In this document: piece by piece, positions 3,725 to 23,637 of the stretch
Layout of the letters: each line of letters opens with the position of its first letter
How positions within the stretch are numbered: the first letter of the stretch is position 1
Sequence record: NC_019401.1
Length of the DNA: 64,000 bases
Direction: 5' to 3' (one strand)
The notes under the pieces: generated by a model
Told to the model about the DNA's origin: nothing
Database searches by the model: none
The model's input: the letters and a program-made list of their open reading frames with translations, nothing else
Made by a program: the position numbers and the translations under genes

Positions 3725-3838
3725 GTGGAGTTCGTCTAGCGGCCCAGGACACGAAAAGCGATTCTTGACTAAGAATCTTACGGCATTTATAACTTTCATT
3801 TCACGAACGTAACATGGGTTCGAATCCCATACTCCACT
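3725..3838 (+). tRNA. tRNA-Glu(TTC) interrupted by a 41-nt insertion (3754-3794) at position 28/29
   Basis: GTGGAGT/ACTCCAC acceptor; Glu-type D arm; A26-C-G|insert|TTC-ATTTCAC-GAA-CG; T arm ATGGG-TTCGAAT-CCCAT. Confidence 0.85.
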
Positions 3839-4508: not shown

Positions 4509-4706
4509 ATGAAAGTACAGTGGATTAAAATTAAAAATCCAGATGATATGCAATTCTTCGCTGGAAAGATTTATCCAAAAGATAAAGATGACTATCAATA
4601 TATCGAAGATGAATTTGGTACGCAGTACTCGGTAAGTCCTGATGGACTTAAAGAACTTCAGAATTTCGGATGGGAAATTGAGGTACAATATGAAAGTATA
4701 CATTGA
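4509..4706 (+). CDS. hypothetical protein
   Basis: ORF track; tiles with neighbours. Confidence 0.6.
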   Translation: MKVQWIKIKNPDDMQFFAGKIYPKDKDDYQYIEDEFGTQYSVSPDGLKELQNFGWEIEVQYESIH

Positions 4707-5055
4707 TGATATTCGTGATCCTCAAAAGTACTTGACTGCTGAACAAGCTGAAGGTATTGTATGGCTCAAAGAATGGTGGGAAGCAAAACGTTTTTTGATT
4801 GAACATTCTTCTGAAATTGAAGTAATTCATTTCGATCATTATATGGATGAACCAACTTTAACTGGTACTGATCTGTTTATGATGGTTGCGGGTGATTGCA
4901 TGTGGGGTGATAAAGAACATTGGCCTAATGTGAAAACCATTTATCTTCATTCTTCGGATGAAGACCATATTGAAGAATTGATGGAAAACTATGCAGAACC
5001 TATGCATAAGGCTGGTGTAGAAGTTATCAATAATAGTCAGAGGAATAATTACTGA
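4690..5055 (+). CDS. cyclic-phosphate-processing receiver (cREC-like) domain protein, copy 1
   Basis: MKVYIDDIR...W...IHFDHYM...TGTD pattern; start moved to ATG 4690 (GAGG RBS). Confidence 0.7.
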   Translation: MKVYIDDIRDPQKYLTAEQAEGIVWLKEWWEAKRFLIEHSSEIEVIHFDHYMDEPTLTGTDLFMMVAGDCMWGDKEHWPNVKTIYLHSSDEDHIEELMENYAEPMHKAGVEVINNSQRNNY

Positions 5056-5411
5056 TGAAAGTATATGTTGATGATATTCGTAATCCAGAAAACCATCTCA
5101 GTGCTGAACAGGCCGAAGGAATCCACTGGAAAAAAGAATGGTGGGAAGCAAAGAACTTTATCTTCGATAACTGCGAAGAAATTGAAACTATTCATCTGGA
5201 TAATTTCTTAGGTGATAGTACACATACTGGTGCAGATATACTTCGTATGATAACTCGTAGTTTAAAACGAGGTATGTTCCCTAAACTGAAACAAATTTAT
5301 ATTCACAGTTCTGACAAAGAAGTTGTGAATAATTTATATAACTCTCAGATCGAGCGTTGTAAAGAAGCAGGTGTTGAGTTAATAAAAAACTCACGTCCTA
5401 ATCGTACTTAA
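5055..5411 (+). CDS. cyclic-phosphate-processing receiver (cREC-like) domain protein, copy 2
   Basis: MKVYVDDIR...IHLDNFLG...TGAD...IYIHS; tandem paralogue of 4690-5055. Confidence 0.7.
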   Translation: MKVYVDDIRNPENHLSAEQAEGIHWKKEWWEAKNFIFDNCEEIETIHLDNFLGDSTHTGADILRMITRSLKRGMFPKLKQIYIHSSDKEVVNNLYNSQIERCKEAGVELIKNSRPNRT

Positions 5412-5419
5412 TAAAATAT

Positions 5420-5546
5420 GGCGAGTTAGCTCAGTGGTAGAGCACGTATGAAACCCAGGATTCCTGTACTTGAATCCCGCAGCAACTATAACTCTCAAGC
5501 CTTTTAAGCTCGTGGTCGGGGCGTTCGAATCCCCCACTCGCCGCCA
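5420..5546 (+). tRNA. tRNA-Lys(TTT) interrupted by a 51-nt insertion (5447-5497) at position 28/29
   Basis: GGCGAGT/ACTCGCC acceptor; GCTC/GAGC D stem; ACG|insert|AGC-CTTTTAA-GCT-CGT; T-loop; CCA encoded. Confidence 0.85.
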
Positions 5547-5562
5547 AATACAGGATAAAAAT

Positions 5563-5796
5563 ATGTCAATTTTTTCTGAAATTAAAAATAGTTTTTTAAA
5601 TGCTGTTAAAACTGATGTTTCTTTCGTAGATCCAGCAATTGCACGTGAGCAATCATCTAAGTCAGTAAATCCTACTACTTATGATCGCTATCAGAAGTAT
5701 CATTTTACGTCTGGAGAAATGTCTAAAATGGACAAAGTACTTGGAAATTCCATTAATGCTGTAATTGATAATATTAAAAAGGGTATCATTAGCTGA
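5563..5796 (+). CDS. hypothetical protein
   Basis: The true start is probably ATG 5563 (AGGA RBS); the 5470 start lies inside the tRNA. Confidence 0.6.
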   Translation: MSIFSEIKNSFLNAVKTDVSFVDPAIAREQSSKSVNPTTYDRYQKYHFTSGEMSKMDKVLGNSINAVIDNIKKGIIS

Positions 5797-6545: not shown

Positions 6546-6574
6546 TTGACTTACATTTACTGAAACTGTATGAT
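6546..6574 (+). promoter_or_regulatory. sigma70-type promoter for the autotransporter
   Basis: TTGACT-N17-TATGAT. Confidence 0.7.
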
Positions 6575-6641
6575 ATATTTCAAGGCGGTAAGATGGCCGA
6601 AGCGAAGAAGTTCAATTATAAATTTACCTGTTGGTGAAAAA

Positions 6642-8375
6642 ATGAAAAAGATTCTGATAGCTGTGACGTTTTTGGGATTGTCAAGTACTTCGTTTGGGGC
6701 AACCAGTCCAAATGACTATAAAGTTTCATGTGATTCAGTTAATAGTCACGCAAGTCAGCAACAATGGTCACAAGTTGCTGCTGAATTACCACGTCTGACA
6801 AATGCGTTGGGGCGTACTCCAACTGAAACTGAAATGAAAGCCTGCGTTGGTAAATCAAATTGGGATGGTTGGCAAAATTCTTCAAGTTATGTACCTACTA
6901 CCCCTGGTGGTACAGTTTCAGTAAGTAAAGATGATTTCAAAAAAGATCAGGATCGCCAAGATGCAAATCTTGATAAAGAAACTCAAGATCGCCAAGATTC
7001 CGACCAGAAAATCGTTGATGACCAGAAAAATGTTGACGATGCTCAGAACGTAGAAATCGGCAAAAAGGCAGATCAATCAGCATTGGATCAAGAAGTTCAG
7101 GATCGTAAAGACGGAGATAAAGCCCTGTCTGATACGATTGATAAGAACAAATCTGAACAGGCAACCAAAGATGGAGAACAGGATCAAGCTATTACTGACC
7201 TTGATAAAAACAAAGTCAATAAAGATGATCAAAAAGCCGTTGATAATGCACAAAACGCCGCCATCGGTGAAAAAGCAAATCAATCAGATCTGGATAAAGA
7301 AGTAGCTAATCGTACTGATGGTGACAAAGCATTGTCCGACAGTATTCAAAAATCCAAAGATGATCAGGCTGCTATTGATGCCGCCCAAAACGTGGTAATT
7401 GATAGTAAGGCGAATCAAGCCGACCTGGAAAAAGAAGTAGCTGATCGTCAATCAGGTGATGATAAACTTCATAGTCAGATTGATCAAAATAACGCACGTG
7501 ATGATGCTCAAGATGTAGCCATAAATGGCAAAGTAGATAAATCTACCTATTCAGTTGATAAAGCTAAACAAGCTGTTCATGATGCTGTTCAGGATGCTGC
7601 GATTGTTGGTCTTGTGGTAACTAAAGCTGACAAAGCTGTTCTGGATAAAGAAGTAACTGCTCGCAAAGATGCGGATAAAGTACTGCAATCAAATATTGAT
7701 TCTGAAGCCCAAACTCGTGTTAACGCCGATATTGCGTTGAAGAACAATATTGATCAGAACAAAGCAGACCAGGCTAAAACTGACGCTAAACAAGATAAGG
7801 CTCTCAGTACTGAAACTGATAACCGTATCGCTGGAGATAATGCACTGAAAGCTAACATTGATAAAAACAAAGCTGACCAAGCCGTAACCGATTCTAATCA
7901 GGATAAGGTTATCACAACTAAAGCAAGTAAGATCGAACTGACAAGTGAAACTGCGTCCCGCAAATCTGCTGATGCGAAGTTGTCCAACCGAATCGATTCT
8001 AACGATGCTACGTTAGTCCAACATGACCAACGCATTACCAGCAATACTCAACGTATTGGTTCTGTAGAAGGTCGTGTATCCAATCTGGAACAAAGTACTA
8101 ACAAGCGTTTCTCTGATATGGACAAACGTATCGGTGATAACCGTAAAGTTGCAAGTGCAGGTATTGCTGGTGCTGGTGCAATGGCGAACATTCCCCAGGT
8201 ATCACAGGGAAGTACGTTCTCAGTCGGTGCTGGTGTCGGTGGGTATGATTCTGAACAAGCGGTTGCCGTAGGGTTTAGTGCACGTGTGAATAACAATGTC
8301 GTCACTAAAATGTCTGTAAGCACTAATACTCAGTCTGAAGTACTTTGGGGTGCAGGTGTTGGTGTAGAGTGGTAA
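6642..8375 (+). CDS. YadA-like trimeric autotransporter adhesin
   Basis: Signal peptide MKKILIAVTFLGLSSTSFGA; coiled-coil stalk with repeated ExxxRxxxDxxL; C-terminal anchor ASAGIAGAGAMANIPQ...GAGVGVEW. Confidence 0.9.
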   Translation: MKKILIAVTFLGLSSTSFGATSPNDYKVSCDSVNSHASQQQWSQVAAELPRLTNALGRTPTETEMKACVGKSNWDGWQNSSSYVPTTPGGTVSVSKDDFKKDQDRQDANLDKETQDRQDSDQKIVDDQKNVDDAQNVEIGKKADQSALDQEVQDRKDGDKALSDTIDKNKSEQATKDGEQDQAITDLDKNKVNKDDQKAVDNAQNAAIGEKANQSDLDKEVANRTDGDKALSDSIQKSKDDQAAIDAAQNVVIDSKANQADLEKEVADRQSGDDKLHSQIDQNNARDDAQDVAINGKVDKSTYSVDKAKQAVHDAVQDAAIVGLVVTKADKAVLDKEVTARKDADKVLQSNIDSEAQTRVNADIALKNNIDQNKADQAKTDAKQDKALSTETDNRIAGDNALKANIDKNKADQAVTDSNQDKVITTKASKIELTSETASRKSADAKLSNRIDSNDATLVQHDQRITSNTQRIGSVEGRVSNLEQSTNKRFSDMDKRIGDNRKVASAGIAGAGAMANIPQVSQGSTFSVGAGVGGYDSEQAVAVGFSARVNNNVVTKMSVSTNTQSEVLWGAGVGVEW

Positions 8376-10602: not shown

Positions 10603-10722
10603 GGAATCTTACAGCAAAAATAATTAATTTTTGATGAAAACAAAACGACGGCGGTTCGAATCCCCACCCACGATTTGCCTTATTTAAAGTGGGAGCATGG
10701 TGCTGGATAAACAAGAGATTCC
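10603..10722 (+). ncRNA. ACAGCAA element, permuted tRNA-like form
   Basis: GGAATCT/AGATTCC outer helix, ACAGCAA, T-loop GGTTCGAATCC, CCCAC/GTGGG acceptor-like helix. Confidence 0.75.
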
Positions 10723-11300: not shown

Positions 11301-11418
11301 GAAATCTTACAGCAAACAATATCTTATATTTTTTATGCGAAAAAAACGATGTGGTTCGAATCCACAACAACCATGTTGCTATGTTGGTTGTGCATGGGGC
11401 TAGAAAACAACAGATTTC
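11301..11418 (+). ncRNA. ACAGCAA element, permuted tRNA-like form
   Basis: GAAATCT/AGATTTC helix; ACAGCAA; TGTGG-TTCGAAT-CCACA; ACAACCA/TGGTTGT. Confidence 0.75.
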
Positions 11419-11604: not shown

Positions 11605-11676
11605 GTTCCCATCGTCTAGCGGCTAGGACGCTTCCCTTTCAAGGAGGAAACCGGAGTTCGATTCTCCGTGGGAACG
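11605..11676 (+). tRNA. tRNA-Glu(TTC), uninterrupted
   Basis: GTTCCCA/TGGGAAC; CTTCC-CTTTCAA-GGAGG. Confidence 0.92.
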
Positions 11677-11688
11677 CAAAGTAGTTTT

Positions 11689-11771: not shown

Positions 11772-11878
11772 AAGAATCGCACAGCAAACATAAATCTTAT
11801 ATATTTCATTTGGCGAAAAACACCTTCGGTTCAATTCCGATTTACCACTGGTTGTGGGGATAGAAAAACACGATTCTT
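11772..11878 (+). ncRNA. ACAGCAA element with Gln-like anticodon arm and T arm (permuted)
   Basis: AAGAATCG/CGATTCTT; TTTC-ATTTGGC-GAAA; TCGG-TTCAATT-CCGA. Confidence 0.7.
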
Positions 11879-11905: not shown

Positions 11906-11985
11906 GAAGTGGGATTTAAACAGCAAACTAACCCTTTACTGAAAATCATATAGTAGATGGATTACTCGGAATTTCGATTCCCTTC
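11906..11985 (+). ncRNA. ACAGCAA element, degenerate
   Basis: GAAG(T)GGGA/TCCCTTC helix; ACAGCAA at 11920. Confidence 0.5.
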
Positions 11986-12106
11986 TTAATCATTACTCGC
12001 ACAGTATTAAAACAGTGTATTGTTTAAGTTCGTCAACTTATTCAATTATCCTTTTATTAAATCCCGTATAATAAAGTACTTAAATCCTATTGGACAGTAC
12101 TTTTAT

Positions 12107-12207: not shown

Positions 12208-12330
12208 GGGAAAGTAGCTCAGTTGGTAGAGCAGGTAAGAAAACCCAAATTACTGTATTGTAATTTCACAGCAACCATACTTCATCCACTTTTAATGGCC
12301 TGGTCGTTGGTTCAAATCCAACCTTTCCCA
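12208..12330 (+). tRNA. tRNA-Lys(TTT) interrupted by a 50-nt insertion (12236-12285) at position 28/29
   Basis: GGGAAAG/CTTTCCC; GCTC/GAGC; AGG|insert|CCA-CTTTTAA-TGG-CCT; GTTGG-TTCAAAT-CCAAC. Confidence 0.85.
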
Positions 12331-12333
12331 CAC

Positions 12334-12395
12334 AGAATCTAACAGCAAACCTTATTTTATCAAACTTTTACTTTGAAACCAAAATAATAGATTCT
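12334..12395 (+). ncRNA. minimal ACAGCAA element displaying a Lys(UUU) anticodon stem-loop
   Basis: AGAATCTA/TAGATTCT; CAAA-CTTTTAC-TTTG. Confidence 0.7.
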
Positions 12396-13076: not shown

Positions 13077-13122
13077 AAGAATCCATACAGCATTACTTTG
13101 GTCAATAATATATTGGATTCTT
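13077..13122 (+). ncRNA. minimal ACAGCA element (possible Gln-UUG loop)
   Basis: AAGAATCC/GGATTCTT; ACAGCA; CTTTGGT loop. Confidence 0.55.
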
Positions 13123-14053: not shown

Positions 14054-14192
14054 AAGAATCTAACAGCAATTCAATTGTTAACTAAAAATAGCTGCCTCGC
14101 GGCATGTAGGTTCGAATCCTACGAACTATGTCAGTACTGAATAGTGATGGTGAAACAGGTAGACACGGCTATCAACACAAACATAGATTCTT
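14054..14192 (+). ncRNA. ACAGCAA element enclosing a circularly permuted tRNA-Leu-like sequence
   Basis: 3' half (ATAGC, variable arm, GTAGG-TTCGAAT-CCTAC) precedes 5' half (ATAGTGA-TG-GTG-AAACAGGTAGA-CAC-G-GCTAT). Confidence 0.8.
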
Positions 14193-14310
14193 GTATTAAT
14201 TAAATCTACAAGAGCATACGTATATTGATTCAATAAGCTATAGACTTTATACGATGGGTAGCAGATGGCTTATCATCTGTCGGTAGTTACGCTGCGGCTA
14301 CCAACAAATT

Positions 14311-14414
14311 TGGAATTCAACAGCAATTCATACTATCCCGCCGCATGTCGCAGTTTCGAGTCCTGCCTTCACTTCGGTATGGTAGATCAGCGGCCTAAAA
14401 AGAAATAAATTCCA
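14311..14414 (+). ncRNA. ACAGCAA element enclosing a degenerate permuted tRNA
   Basis: TGGAATT/AATTCCA; GCGGC/GCCGC anticodon stem; TTCG-capped acceptor remnant; paralogue of 15460-15580. Confidence 0.7.
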
Positions 14415-14428
14415 GTATTAATTAAAAA

Positions 14429-15459: not shown

Positions 15460-15580
15460 TGGAATTCAACAGCAAATCAATTCTATCCACGCAACATGTC
15501 GCAGGTTCAAGTCCTGCCAGTACTTTCGAGTACTGTAGCTCAGTTGGTAGAGCAGTCGCCTATAAAAGAAATGAATTCCA
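15460..15580 (+). ncRNA. ACAGCAA element enclosing a near-perfect circularly permuted tRNA
   Basis: GCAGG-TTCAAGT-CCTGC, CAGTACT-TTCG-AGTACTG, TA-GCTC-AGTTGGTA-GAGC; TGGAATTCA/TGAATTCCA outer helix. Confidence 0.85.
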
Positions 15581-15871: not shown

Positions 15872-15925
15872 TAGAATCTAACAGCAATTAAAACTTCTCG
15901 GATATAGAAAAAACAATAGATTCTA
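15872..15925 (+). ncRNA. minimal ACAGCAA element
   Basis: TAGAATCTA/TAGATTCTA; TTCT-CGGATAT-AGAA hairpin. Confidence 0.7.
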
Positions 15926-16198: not shown

Positions 16199-16262
16199 GG
16201 AATCTAACAGCAACCATATATTGAACTCAACTGTTAATTGAAAACCTCAAAAAATGGATTCC
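16199..16262 (+). ncRNA. minimal ACAGCAA element displaying an Asn(GUU) anticodon stem-loop
   Basis: GGAATCTA/TGGATTCC; TCAA-CTGTTAA-TTGA. Confidence 0.75.
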
Positions 16263-17208: not shown

Positions 17209-17264
17209 TAGAATCTAACAGCAATTAAAACTCATTTGGATAATATGAAAAACAATAGATTCTA
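17209..17264 (+). ncRNA. minimal ACAGCAA element (near-copy of 15872-15925)
   Basis: TAGAATCTAACAGCAATTAAAACT...GAAAAACAATAGATTCTAG. Confidence 0.7.
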
Positions 17265-23546: not shown

Positions 23547-23619
23547 ACCTCGTTAACTCAGTTGGTAGAGTAACGGTCTTTTAAACCGTGAGTCGCTGGT
23601 TCGAACCCAGCACGAGGTA
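23547..23619 (+). tRNA. tRNA-Lys(TTT), uninterrupted
   Basis: ACCTCGT/ACGAGGT; ACGGT-CTTTTAA-ACCGT. Confidence 0.93.
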
Positions 23620-23637
23620 CTAATATTAAGGAATATA

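Follow-up and report, generated by a model that had tools for sequence, protein, structure and literature searches.

A tRNA-Lys-shaped RNA of Cronobacter phage GAP32 with a conserved inserted module, a candidate Y-RNA-like partner of a phage Ro60-like protein

What does a phage gain from a tRNA-Lys(UUU)-shaped gene whose anticodon stem is split by 51 additional nucleotides? The question is raised by positions 5420-5546 of the DNA analysed here, the final 64 kb of record JN882285 (358,663 bp), which is Cronobacter phage vB_CsaM_GAP32, a Rak2-like jumbo phage (Mimasvirus); this stretch covers the GAP32 tRNA cluster and is termed the window below (window position 5420 is 300083 of the record). 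The original prediction, made from these letters, had taken the element for a tRNA with an intron that automated annotation would probably miss and had linked it to the tRNA-Lys-directed defences PrrC and PARIS. Our analysis of the RNA, its relatives and their gene neighbourhoods makes it probable that the element is a stable tRNA/Y-RNA chimera bound by a phage Ro-like protein of the DUF2828 family, with the inserted module as the predicted binding site and the tRNA body as a mimic.

The gene reads GGCGAGT-TA-GCTC-AGTGGTA-GAGC-A-CG, 51 nt, AGC-CTTTTAA-GCT-CG-TGGTC-GGGG(C)G-TTCGAAT-CCCCC-ACTCGCC-G-CCA. It has the tRNA (RF00005) cloverleaf, with a 7-bp acceptor stem, a D arm and a T arm with a TTCRA loop, but lacks a continuous 5-bp anticodon stem, which is split after position 28 by the insert 5447-5497 (TATGAAACCCA-GGATTC-CTGTACTT-GAATCC-CG-CAGCAAC-TATAACTCTCA); the anticodon loop CUUUUAA is intact. 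The T arm, GGGG(C)G/CCCCC, contains one bulged C (5522), specific to GAP32 and lacking in phage CBB and all other orthologues. The tRNA-Lys(UUU) shape, the place of the insert at 28/29, the bulge and the encoded CCA can all be read directly from the letters and agree with what had been described. Deletion of the insert in silico restores the anticodon arm, as predicted, and ARAGORN then calls tRNA-Lys(ttt), while the unspliced sequence under the intron option of ARAGORN gives inconsistent calls. The gene is not hidden, because GenBank already annotates exactly this interval (300083-300209, labelled “tRNA-Lys, tRNAscan-SE”), with the next coding sequence starting at 5563; the expectation that it would be missed is borne out for ARAGORN and for Rfam at gathering score, neither of which reports it. 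An open reading frame starting with TTG inside the RNA (5470..5796) is indeed present in the mechanical list of reading frames, and this start is an artefact of that list. The truly unannotated copies of the closed form, i.e. with the module inserted in a tRNA, are those at 3725-3837 and 12208-12330, and the coding sequence for a “putative membrane protein” annotated over the latter is probably spurious.

The RNA at 5420-5546 is kept in 15 other phage records at 75-93% identity, among them CBB, Serratia phage BF, six Erwinia pEa_SNUABM phages, Yersinia phages fHe-Yen9-03 and fHe-Yen9-04 and Vibrio phage D479, where it is annotated variously as tRNA-Lys, tRNA-Phe, tRNA-OTHER, tRNA-Pseudo or tRNA-Undet. 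The cloverleaf with the extra hairpin, scored over 11 orthologues and paralogues, was 96.6% paired, compared with 78% in column shuffles, and the covariation score was 0.50, compared with 0.16 in shuffles and at most 0.12 with slid partners; the structure scored was taken from the first sequence, which somewhat favours that structure. Changes on both sides were found in every helix but the invariant D stem, including pairs 27-43 and 28-42, the insert hairpin and the lower anticodon stem. The conservation of the feature exceeds chance. Among 50,697 phage records we found no uninterrupted orthologue that would fix the boundaries of the insert.

Isolate genomes and pattern-selected IMG/VR loci, scanned for over-long tRNA frames, yielded more than 45 distinct insert-bearing tRNAs, a lower bound; a first IMG/VR pattern scan had given mostly chance matches, with 6 of 103 in a tRNA context. 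The IMG/VR loci may be phylogenetically clustered and several of the family sets used below were chosen by scripts written for this analysis. The tRNA bodies are of Lys, Glu, Asp, Asn, Pro, Thr, Ile, Ser, Ala, Met and Leu type, and the inserts measure 40-56 nt, with 28/29 as the site of most, 27/28 or 29/30 of some and 31/32 or a later position of a few. Their anatomy is shared: after an exon end that is usually CG follow an A-rich segment, usually beginning with UA, a hairpin of 6-9 bp whose apex is semi-conserved, 2-4 nt with A at the end, the motif C-A-G-C-A-A and a U-rich tail of 7-16 nt. The C, G, C and A of the motif are invariant in 38 aligned members. In the same 38, which a script had selected for hairpins of 5 bp or more, the hairpin was 89.7% paired against 57.7% in shuffles, with a covariation of 0.85 against 0.25 in shuffles and 0.10-0.22 in slid controls. 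The count of G.U (27) against A.C (3) pairs in the hairpin is biased by the choice of the set and was not used as evidence. Across the insert, pairs 27-43 and 28-42 were formed in 85 of 96 cells from 48 members, compared with 46 +/- 4 and a maximum of 61 in 2000 shuffles, and the bridging pairs comprised CG/CG, AC/GU, CC/GG, CU/AG, AU/AU, GC/GC and GG/CC. No Rfam family matched the insert, either at gathering score or by E-value threshold. A pairing of the ACNGC motif with the 3' anticodon strand or the variable loop, considered from minimum free energy (MFE) folds, was inconsistent between members and was dropped. Other over-long phage tRNA genes, at L039 3391-3528 (-), L092 526-663 (-) and L183 8073-8214 (+), do not contain the ACAGCAA module; one such type, 138 nt long, has 68 inserted nucleotides within or close to the anticodon loop, and a second, of 142 nt, has a 71-nt insert holding a T-arm-like element, which recalls the “intron encoding a tRNA” of Lak phages.

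Stem halves that covary across an insert are what a new, protein-dependent tRNA intron would also show. An endonuclease or self-cleavage would then act at both junctions, leaving the exon ends as a nick held by the 39-43 strand; cREC or a kinase-phosphatase would heal them, a phage RNA ligase would join them into functional tRNA-Lys(UUU), and the Ro-like protein could serve as chaperone or recognition subunit. The acceptance of the tRNAs by ARAGORN after in-silico removal, the usual exon CG followed by UA, the encoded CCA with its intact acceptor stem, the cREC genes 8 nt upstream and the RNA ligases of GAP32 and CBB, one of them adjoining the DUF2828 gene, all fit such a pathway, as do the “enigmatic” tRNA introns of Lak megaphages (PMC6784885), where a DUF2828 homologue is encoded too (H112, in Lak-B3). 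We nevertheless consider an intron unlikely, since the 3' junction is unconserved among members, the position of the insert drifts from 27/28 to 31/32 or later, Rfam gave no intron or ribozyme match (E<=10), and the cREC linkage is limited to one phage lineage. Hammerhead, hairpin, pistol, twister and bulge-helix-bulge (BHB) motifs, compared by eye as leads and not as formal tests, did not fit.

The intron reading is further weakened by the occurrence of the module outside intact tRNAs. The window holds about 12 open units of 44-153 nt, in which both ends of the RNA pair as an 8-bp stem (for example AGAAUCUA...UAGAUUCU) and ACAGCAA immediately follows the 5' arm; a permuted tRNA-like body is enclosed in some and just a short hairpin in others (Table 1). 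Their end stems are maintained in CBB and BF orthologues by compensatory changes, two of which distinguish the stem of unit 11772-11878 (AAGAAUCG/CGAUUCUU) from that of its BF orthologue (AGGAUUCG/CGAAUCCU). The extended motif ACAGCAAMC occurs six times in the window, compared with 0.9 expected, always on the + strand and always at 11.3-16.2 kb. Several open units begin a few nucleotides past a tRNA 3' end (11772, 12334), as if freed by tRNA processing.

Open forms were found in other phages as well. The RNA of IMG/VR locus L308 runs from the 3' arm of the module stem through UUACAGCAAC, the tail, an anticodon hairpin, the variable loop, the T arm and the acceptor 3' strand to a GAAA tetraloop, and from there through the acceptor 5' strand, the D arm, CG and the A-rich segment to the 5' arm of the module stem; the Rfam YrlA model matches two L308 copies with 39 and 30 bits (E 7e-7 and 4e-4; gathering score 69). 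The Felixounavirus VpaE1 has at least four unannotated open-form RNAs in the tRNA array directly downstream of its DUF2828 gene, with another stem, AGACCRU/AYGGUCU, yet the same UUACAGCAAA. Gaps between the VpaE1 tRNAs (L310 5336-5420 and 6256-6340) hold more tRNA-like sequences that lack annotation and have T arms and CCA ends. There is thus one module family in three arrangements, inserted in tRNAs, permuted with an end-formed stem, and as small RNAs; the circular order of the parts is constant over all three, and only the point at which the chain is opened and the presence of a tRNA body vary. The permuted and mini RNAs are unable to splice into tRNAs and therefore cannot be introns, so the module is probably not simply an intron, and the original claim of one finds no support as worded.

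Units of 44-153 bp bordered by 8-bp inverted repeats, present in many copies within one genome region, also resemble a small selfish element of the miniature inverted-repeat transposable element (MITE) kind, with short terminal inverted repeats, which would have broken a tRNA gene into a pseudogene and have no function at the RNA level. The degenerate loops of some members (e.g. CBB_t15), the bulged T stem of the GAP32 copy and the tagging of relatives as “pseudo” in several databases would suit such an element. We judge this highly improbable: orientation is strict, with all six ACAGCAAMC and all module matches on the strand of the tRNAs or of the DUF2828 gene, the stems stay paired across genera by compensatory and G.U changes, the interrupted anticodon stem covaries despite the insertion, conservation of the RNA extends from Mimasvirus to T4-like vibriophages and Felixounavirus, and no target-site duplications were seen.

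The module is linked to a protein gene. In 10 of about 24 independent contigs with insert-bearing tRNAs, a gene for a protein of about 500 amino acids with Pfam DUF2828 and DUF7788/VWA domains lies within 4 kb of these tRNAs, and in 7 of the 10 within 300 nt. A DUF2828 gene is present in just 711 of the 50,697 phage records, among them GAP32 (GAP32_176), CBB and D479, and is often labelled “Ro-like RNA binding protein”. By sequence the similarity of DUF2828 to TROVE is marginal (E 0.02). An AlphaFold model built with 18 homologues (mean predicted local distance difference test score 82, predicted template modelling score 0.78) was aligned over its full length, in a Foldseek search of the PDB, solely with the phiLo (Thermus phage) Ro60 (9kop, E 7e-9; 9l5y, E 4e-7; template modelling score 0.52-0.57), and DUF2828 is accordingly modelled as a Ro60-type ring of HEAT repeats with a C-terminal von Willebrand factor A (vWA) domain bearing a MIDAS, an adhesion site that depends on metal ions.

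To follow the module independently of tRNAs we used R1, a covariance model of the module alone, whose E-values are rough owing to its shortness. On 80 IMG/VR loci centred on DUF2828, R1 gave 21 matches (E<=5), all 21 on the strand of the gene and 15 of them 20-400 nt past its stop codon. Because 12 of the matched loci hold no tRNA gene at all, the module follows the Ro-like gene and not tRNA arrays as such, which also speaks against an intron. A strict scanner for long tRNAs found insert-bearing tRNAs in only 1 of the 80 loci, and the link is seen only through the model of the module alone. No RNA-repair gene recurred beside DUF2828 in these 80 loci. In several uncultured phages the RNAs downstream of DUF2828 (L252 7430-7530, L230 3826-3930 and L262 7714-7805) carry two ACAGCAA motifs, one after the 5' arm of a long-range stem and the other after a small internal hairpin.

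Decoding appears to be served by other genes. Canonical, uninterrupted copies of tRNA-Lys(UUU) and tRNA-Glu(UUC) are present in the window (Table 1), the latter redundant with 3725-3837, and D479 carries a full canonical tRNA set; the insert-bearing Lys copies are dispensable for decoding because 23547-23620 is present. Close orthologues retain the body and switch the anticodon, from UUU to GAU in Yen9-03/04 and from UUC to UCA in Yen9-03, the D479 copy has C33, the loops of some members are degenerate, and the T stem of the GAP32 copy is bulged. Such anticodon drift in kept bodies would be unexpected for decoding tRNAs and, as far as the letters can tell, argues against a role in translation; like the redundancy, it is at odds with splicing into a functional tRNA. 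In the Glu-type orthologue of fHe-Yen9-03 (L003 34-146), the anticodon UCA would read the opal stop codon and the body is otherwise conserved. BF and CBB annotate suppressor-like tRNAs (tRNA-Sup, “tRNA-Pyl CTA”) in the same cluster.

The mechanism that we favour, the bound chimera, would run as follows. The RNA may be freed from the transcript by RNase P and 3' processing, as with its tRNA neighbours, and would stay unspliced, with the anticodon stem divided after C27-G28 by a three-way junction that bears the module. The Ro-like ring would hold the module as Ro60 holds the conserved stem and motif of Y RNAs, and the tRNA body with its anticodon loop may act as a mimic that tethers or baits anticodon nucleases, repair ligase, end-healing enzymes or PNPase, presumably for tRNA damage control or counter-defence during infection. 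This Y-RNA-like reading is compatible with a decoy or repair role, and PrrC or PARIS survive as one possible target of the tRNA mimic.

tRNA-Lys is the target of PrrC and of PARIS, and the unspliced RNA might soak up or resist tRNA-Lys-cleaving defences as a stand-alone anticodon-nuclease decoy, with no Ro-like partner. Several copies retain the Lys(UUU) or Glu(UUC) anticodon loop, and mini forms consist of the module plus a Lys-like or Asn-like anticodon hairpin, as such a decoy would predict. The isotypes range widely (Pro, Thr, Ile, Ser, Ala and more), an anticodon-like hairpin is missing from several open forms, and the conserved module and its linkage to DUF2828 would be left unexplained, all of which make a decoy acting alone improbable.

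Several observations weigh against a chimera held by the Ro-like protein. The motif ACAGCAA differs from the Ro-binding GNCGAAN0-1G or CGAA of known Y RNAs, and the Rfam YrlA model matches nothing in the window (E<=5-10). Removal of the insert leaves a perfect 5-bp stem and a 7-nt loop with U33 next to the intact acceptor stem and CCA, as expected of a spliced, translating tRNA, and the flanking cREC genes, together with the ligase beside DUF2828 elsewhere, fit a cut-and-seal pathway equally well. The GAP32 DUF2828 gene lies at record positions 105937-107451, about 190 kb from the RNAs of the window, and no module was found beside it. Finally, some of the covariation sets were selected by script for a hairpin, which inflates the percentage paired.

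Among known systems the closest are the YrlA Y RNAs, tRNA mimics whose genes adjoin that of Ro60 in 254 bacteria and 22 phages, with the Ro motif GNCGAAN0-1G (Chen et al. 2014, PMC4201824). As in YrlA (RF02553), a tRNA-like domain is joined through an anticodon-stem position to a stem with a short conserved motif, putatively protein-binding in the phage, and the module family is encoded on the same strand beside a Ro60-type gene; YrlA itself occurs in bacteria and phages. The end-formed stem typical of YrlA is lacking in 5420-5546 and present in the open relatives of the window, in L308 and in VpaE1, and L308 and 15461-15579 show the exact YrlA topology. Unlike YrlA, 5420-5546 is unpermuted, has free acceptor ends with CCA and a loop-closed module, keeps a genuine anticodon stem-loop, and has a putative partner that is Ro60-like solely at the level of the fold and whose gene in GAP32 is distant. 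A 2024 preprint reports that gp130 of phage Bas63 is Ro60-like and counters the “ppl” defence, and its authors remark that some Bas63 “tRNA genes are possibly Y RNAs” (bioRxiv 10.1101/2024.10.10.617714). Work from 2025 showed that the binding partners of a phage Ro60 include two phage Y-like RNAs as well as host PNPase (PMC12135203). The phiLo Yrl1/Yrl2 system (PMC12135203; PDB 9KOP, 9L5Y) shares with ours a phage Ro60-type ring and Y-like RNAs beside its gene. The phiLo RNAs, unlike those described here, are defined by a CGAA motif and a stem-bulge-stem fold with no tRNA body, and the phiLo protein belongs to the TROVE family, with about 16-17% identity to DUF2828.

Archaeal tRNA genes contain short BHB introns away from 37/38, including in the anticodon stem, and Cyanidioschyzon has permuted tRNA genes. 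Here, too, a short insert lies in the anticodon stem and permuted versions coexist. No bulge-helix-bulge can be drawn at the junctions of 5420-5546 (MFE folds, by eye), unlike in archaea, and the permuted forms, unlike those of Cyanidioschyzon, have acceptor stems closed by a tetraloop, without leader, trailer or CCA. We know of no splicing endonuclease in these hosts or phages. Species 1 and 2 of T4 (rnaC, rnaD) are likewise stable RNAs from a phage tRNA cluster, 119-139 nt long, of unexplained function and one with a T arm; they were rejected as relatives, having no hairpin plus ACAGCAA module, no cloverleaf with an insert and no similarity that we could see. Group I introns also interrupt tRNA genes of bacteria and phages (PMC3984707), and are larger than 200 nt, lie in the anticodon loop and have a catalytic core, unlike the 51-nt insert in the stem. 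The Lak introns, compared by description, are likewise found in over-long, conserved phage tRNA genes that bacterial tRNA finders mis-call, by a mechanism left unexplained; they differ in that the inserts were placed by the eukaryotic mode of tRNAscan, one of them holding tRNA-like sequence.

Beyond GAP32, we lean slightly towards a phage non-coding RNA class, defined by a stem plus ACAGCAA and occurring tRNA-inserted, permuted like YrlA or as small RNAs, that would be the RNA partner of the DUF2828 proteins in at least 711 phages; many “pseudo”, “undetermined” and over-long tRNAs, and many seemingly empty gaps in tRNA arrays, would then be Y-like RNAs acting together with the Ro-like ring in tRNA damage control or counter-defence. 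The literature searched, with most subscription journals outside the search, held no description of the hairpin plus ACAGCAA module, of its insertion in tRNAs or of an RNA partner of DUF2828. If correct, this would give a Ro60-like family in hundreds of phages a sequence signature and an RNA partner, the family spanning Felixounavirus, A511-like Listeria phages, mycobacteriophages and KVP40-like phages as well as Rak2-like jumbo phages. It would also explain the 110-130-nt “tRNA-Pseudo”, “tRNA-Undet” and mis-typed tRNAs of jumbo phages, reveal some 15 RNA genes without annotation in the tRNA cluster of GAP32 alone, and mean that tRNA mimicry of the Y-RNA type can be built by placing a putative protein-binding module inside a complete tRNA. 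Were the intron to prove right, bacterial systems would gain their first protein-dependent pathway of tRNA splicing.

Table 1. Features of the window, grouped by type, with positions counted from the first letter of the 64-kb stretch.
Feature	Position	Strand	Basis or remark
Whole RNA gene, tRNA-Lys(UUU)-shaped, closed form with inserted module	5420..5546	+	sequence, conservation, covariation; GenBank tRNA-Lys 300083-300209
5' tRNA part: acceptor 5' strand 5420-5426, D arm 5429-5443, A26, C27-G28 (upper anticodon stem)	5420..5446	+	sequence, covariation
Module, A-rich 5' segment UAUGAAACCCA	5447..5457	+	A-rich family-wide, mostly UA-initial after exon CG
Module hairpin GGAUUC / CUGUACUU / GAAUCC	5458..5477	+	covariation; R1 match 5453-5488, 23.3 bits
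Spacer CG and motif CAGCAAC (family consensus A-C-A-G-C-A-A)	5478..5486	+	invariant C/G/C/A columns
Module, pyrimidine/U-rich tail UAUAACUCUCA	5487..5497	+	family anatomy
Lower anticodon stem AGC/GCU, loop CUUUUAA (anticodon UUU), C42-G43 pairing with 5445-5446 across the insert	5498..5512	+	pairing counts, covariation
Variable loop, T arm with bulged C5522, acceptor 3' strand, G73, encoded CCA	5513..5546	+	sequence, covariation
Second closed member: tRNA-Glu(UUC) body, 41-nt module at 28/29 (3754-3794), unannotated in GenBank	3725..3837	+	R1 32.1 bits, top covariance model match in window
Third closed member: tRNA-Lys(UUU) body, 50-nt module, beneath “putative membrane protein” coding sequence in GenBank	12208..12330	+	Rfam tRNA 49.5 bits, R1, covariation
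Open member, end stem GGAAUCUU/GAGAUUCC, ACAGCAAAA, permuted tRNA-like body	10603..10722	+	orthologues in CBB, BF
Open member, GAAAUCU-UACAGCAAAC ... T arm, closed acceptor-like stem ... AGAUUUC	11301..11418	+	
Open member, 2 nt past tRNA-Tyr: AAGAAUCG-CACAGCAAAC ... CGAUUCUU	11772..11878	+	BF orthologue
Open member, GGAUUUAA-ACAGCAAAC ... UUAAAUCC	11912..12064	+	BF: GGAUUUAU/AUAAAUCC
Mini open member, 62 nt, right after 12208-12330: AGAAUCUA-ACAGCAAAC, hairpin UCAAA-CUUUUAC-UUUGA (Lys anticodon loop copy), A-rich segment, UAGAUUCU	12334..12395	+	
Tiny open member, 44 nt: AGAAUCCA-U-ACAGCAUUA ... UGGAUUCU	13078..13121	+	
Open member, permuted tRNA-like body	14055..14191	+	CBB orthologue GGAAUCUA/UGGAUUCC
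Open member, T-arm-like element	14310..14415	+	
Clearest permuted tRNA-like open member, with T arm, UUCG-closed acceptor stem and D arm; ends GGAAUUCA/UGAAUUCC (YrlA topology)	15461..15579	+	
Mini open member, 52 nt	15873..15924	+	
Mini open member, 64 nt, hairpin UCAA-CUGUUAA-UUGA (Asn anticodon loop copy)	16199..16262	+	
Mini open member, 54 nt	17210..17263	+	
Canonical tRNA-Glu(UUC)	11605..11677	+	ARAGORN, Rfam
Canonical uninterrupted tRNA-Lys(UUU)	23547..23620	+	ARAGORN, Rfam
GAP32_420, cREC_REC (PF20274, predicted cyclic-phosphate RNA-end processing)	4642..5055	+	E 1e-9
GAP32_421, cREC_REC paralogue, stop 8 nt upstream of the RNA	5055..5411	+	E 5e-12
GAP32_422, coding sequence, annotated start 5563	5563..5796	+	

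The tandem cREC_REC pair upstream of the RNA, predicted to process RNA ends with 2',3'-cyclic phosphate, is syntenic with the Lys-type RNA only in CBB, BF and Yen9-03, and cREC_REC genes were not found near the module family outside the Mimasvirus/Eneladusvirus lineage; since the adjacency is confined to that lineage, the pair is a weak functional link. Immediately upstream of the GAP32 DUF2828 gene lies an RNA ligase gene (pfam09414; record 104503-107451 for the two, L309 504-3452), a pair that resembles the bacterial rsr-rtcB repair operons. ARAGORN finds 18 ordinary tRNAs in the window, and within the tRNA cluster a reading frame of 601 amino acids (6570-8375), annotated as a YadA-like adhesin, encodes long coiled-coil repeats.

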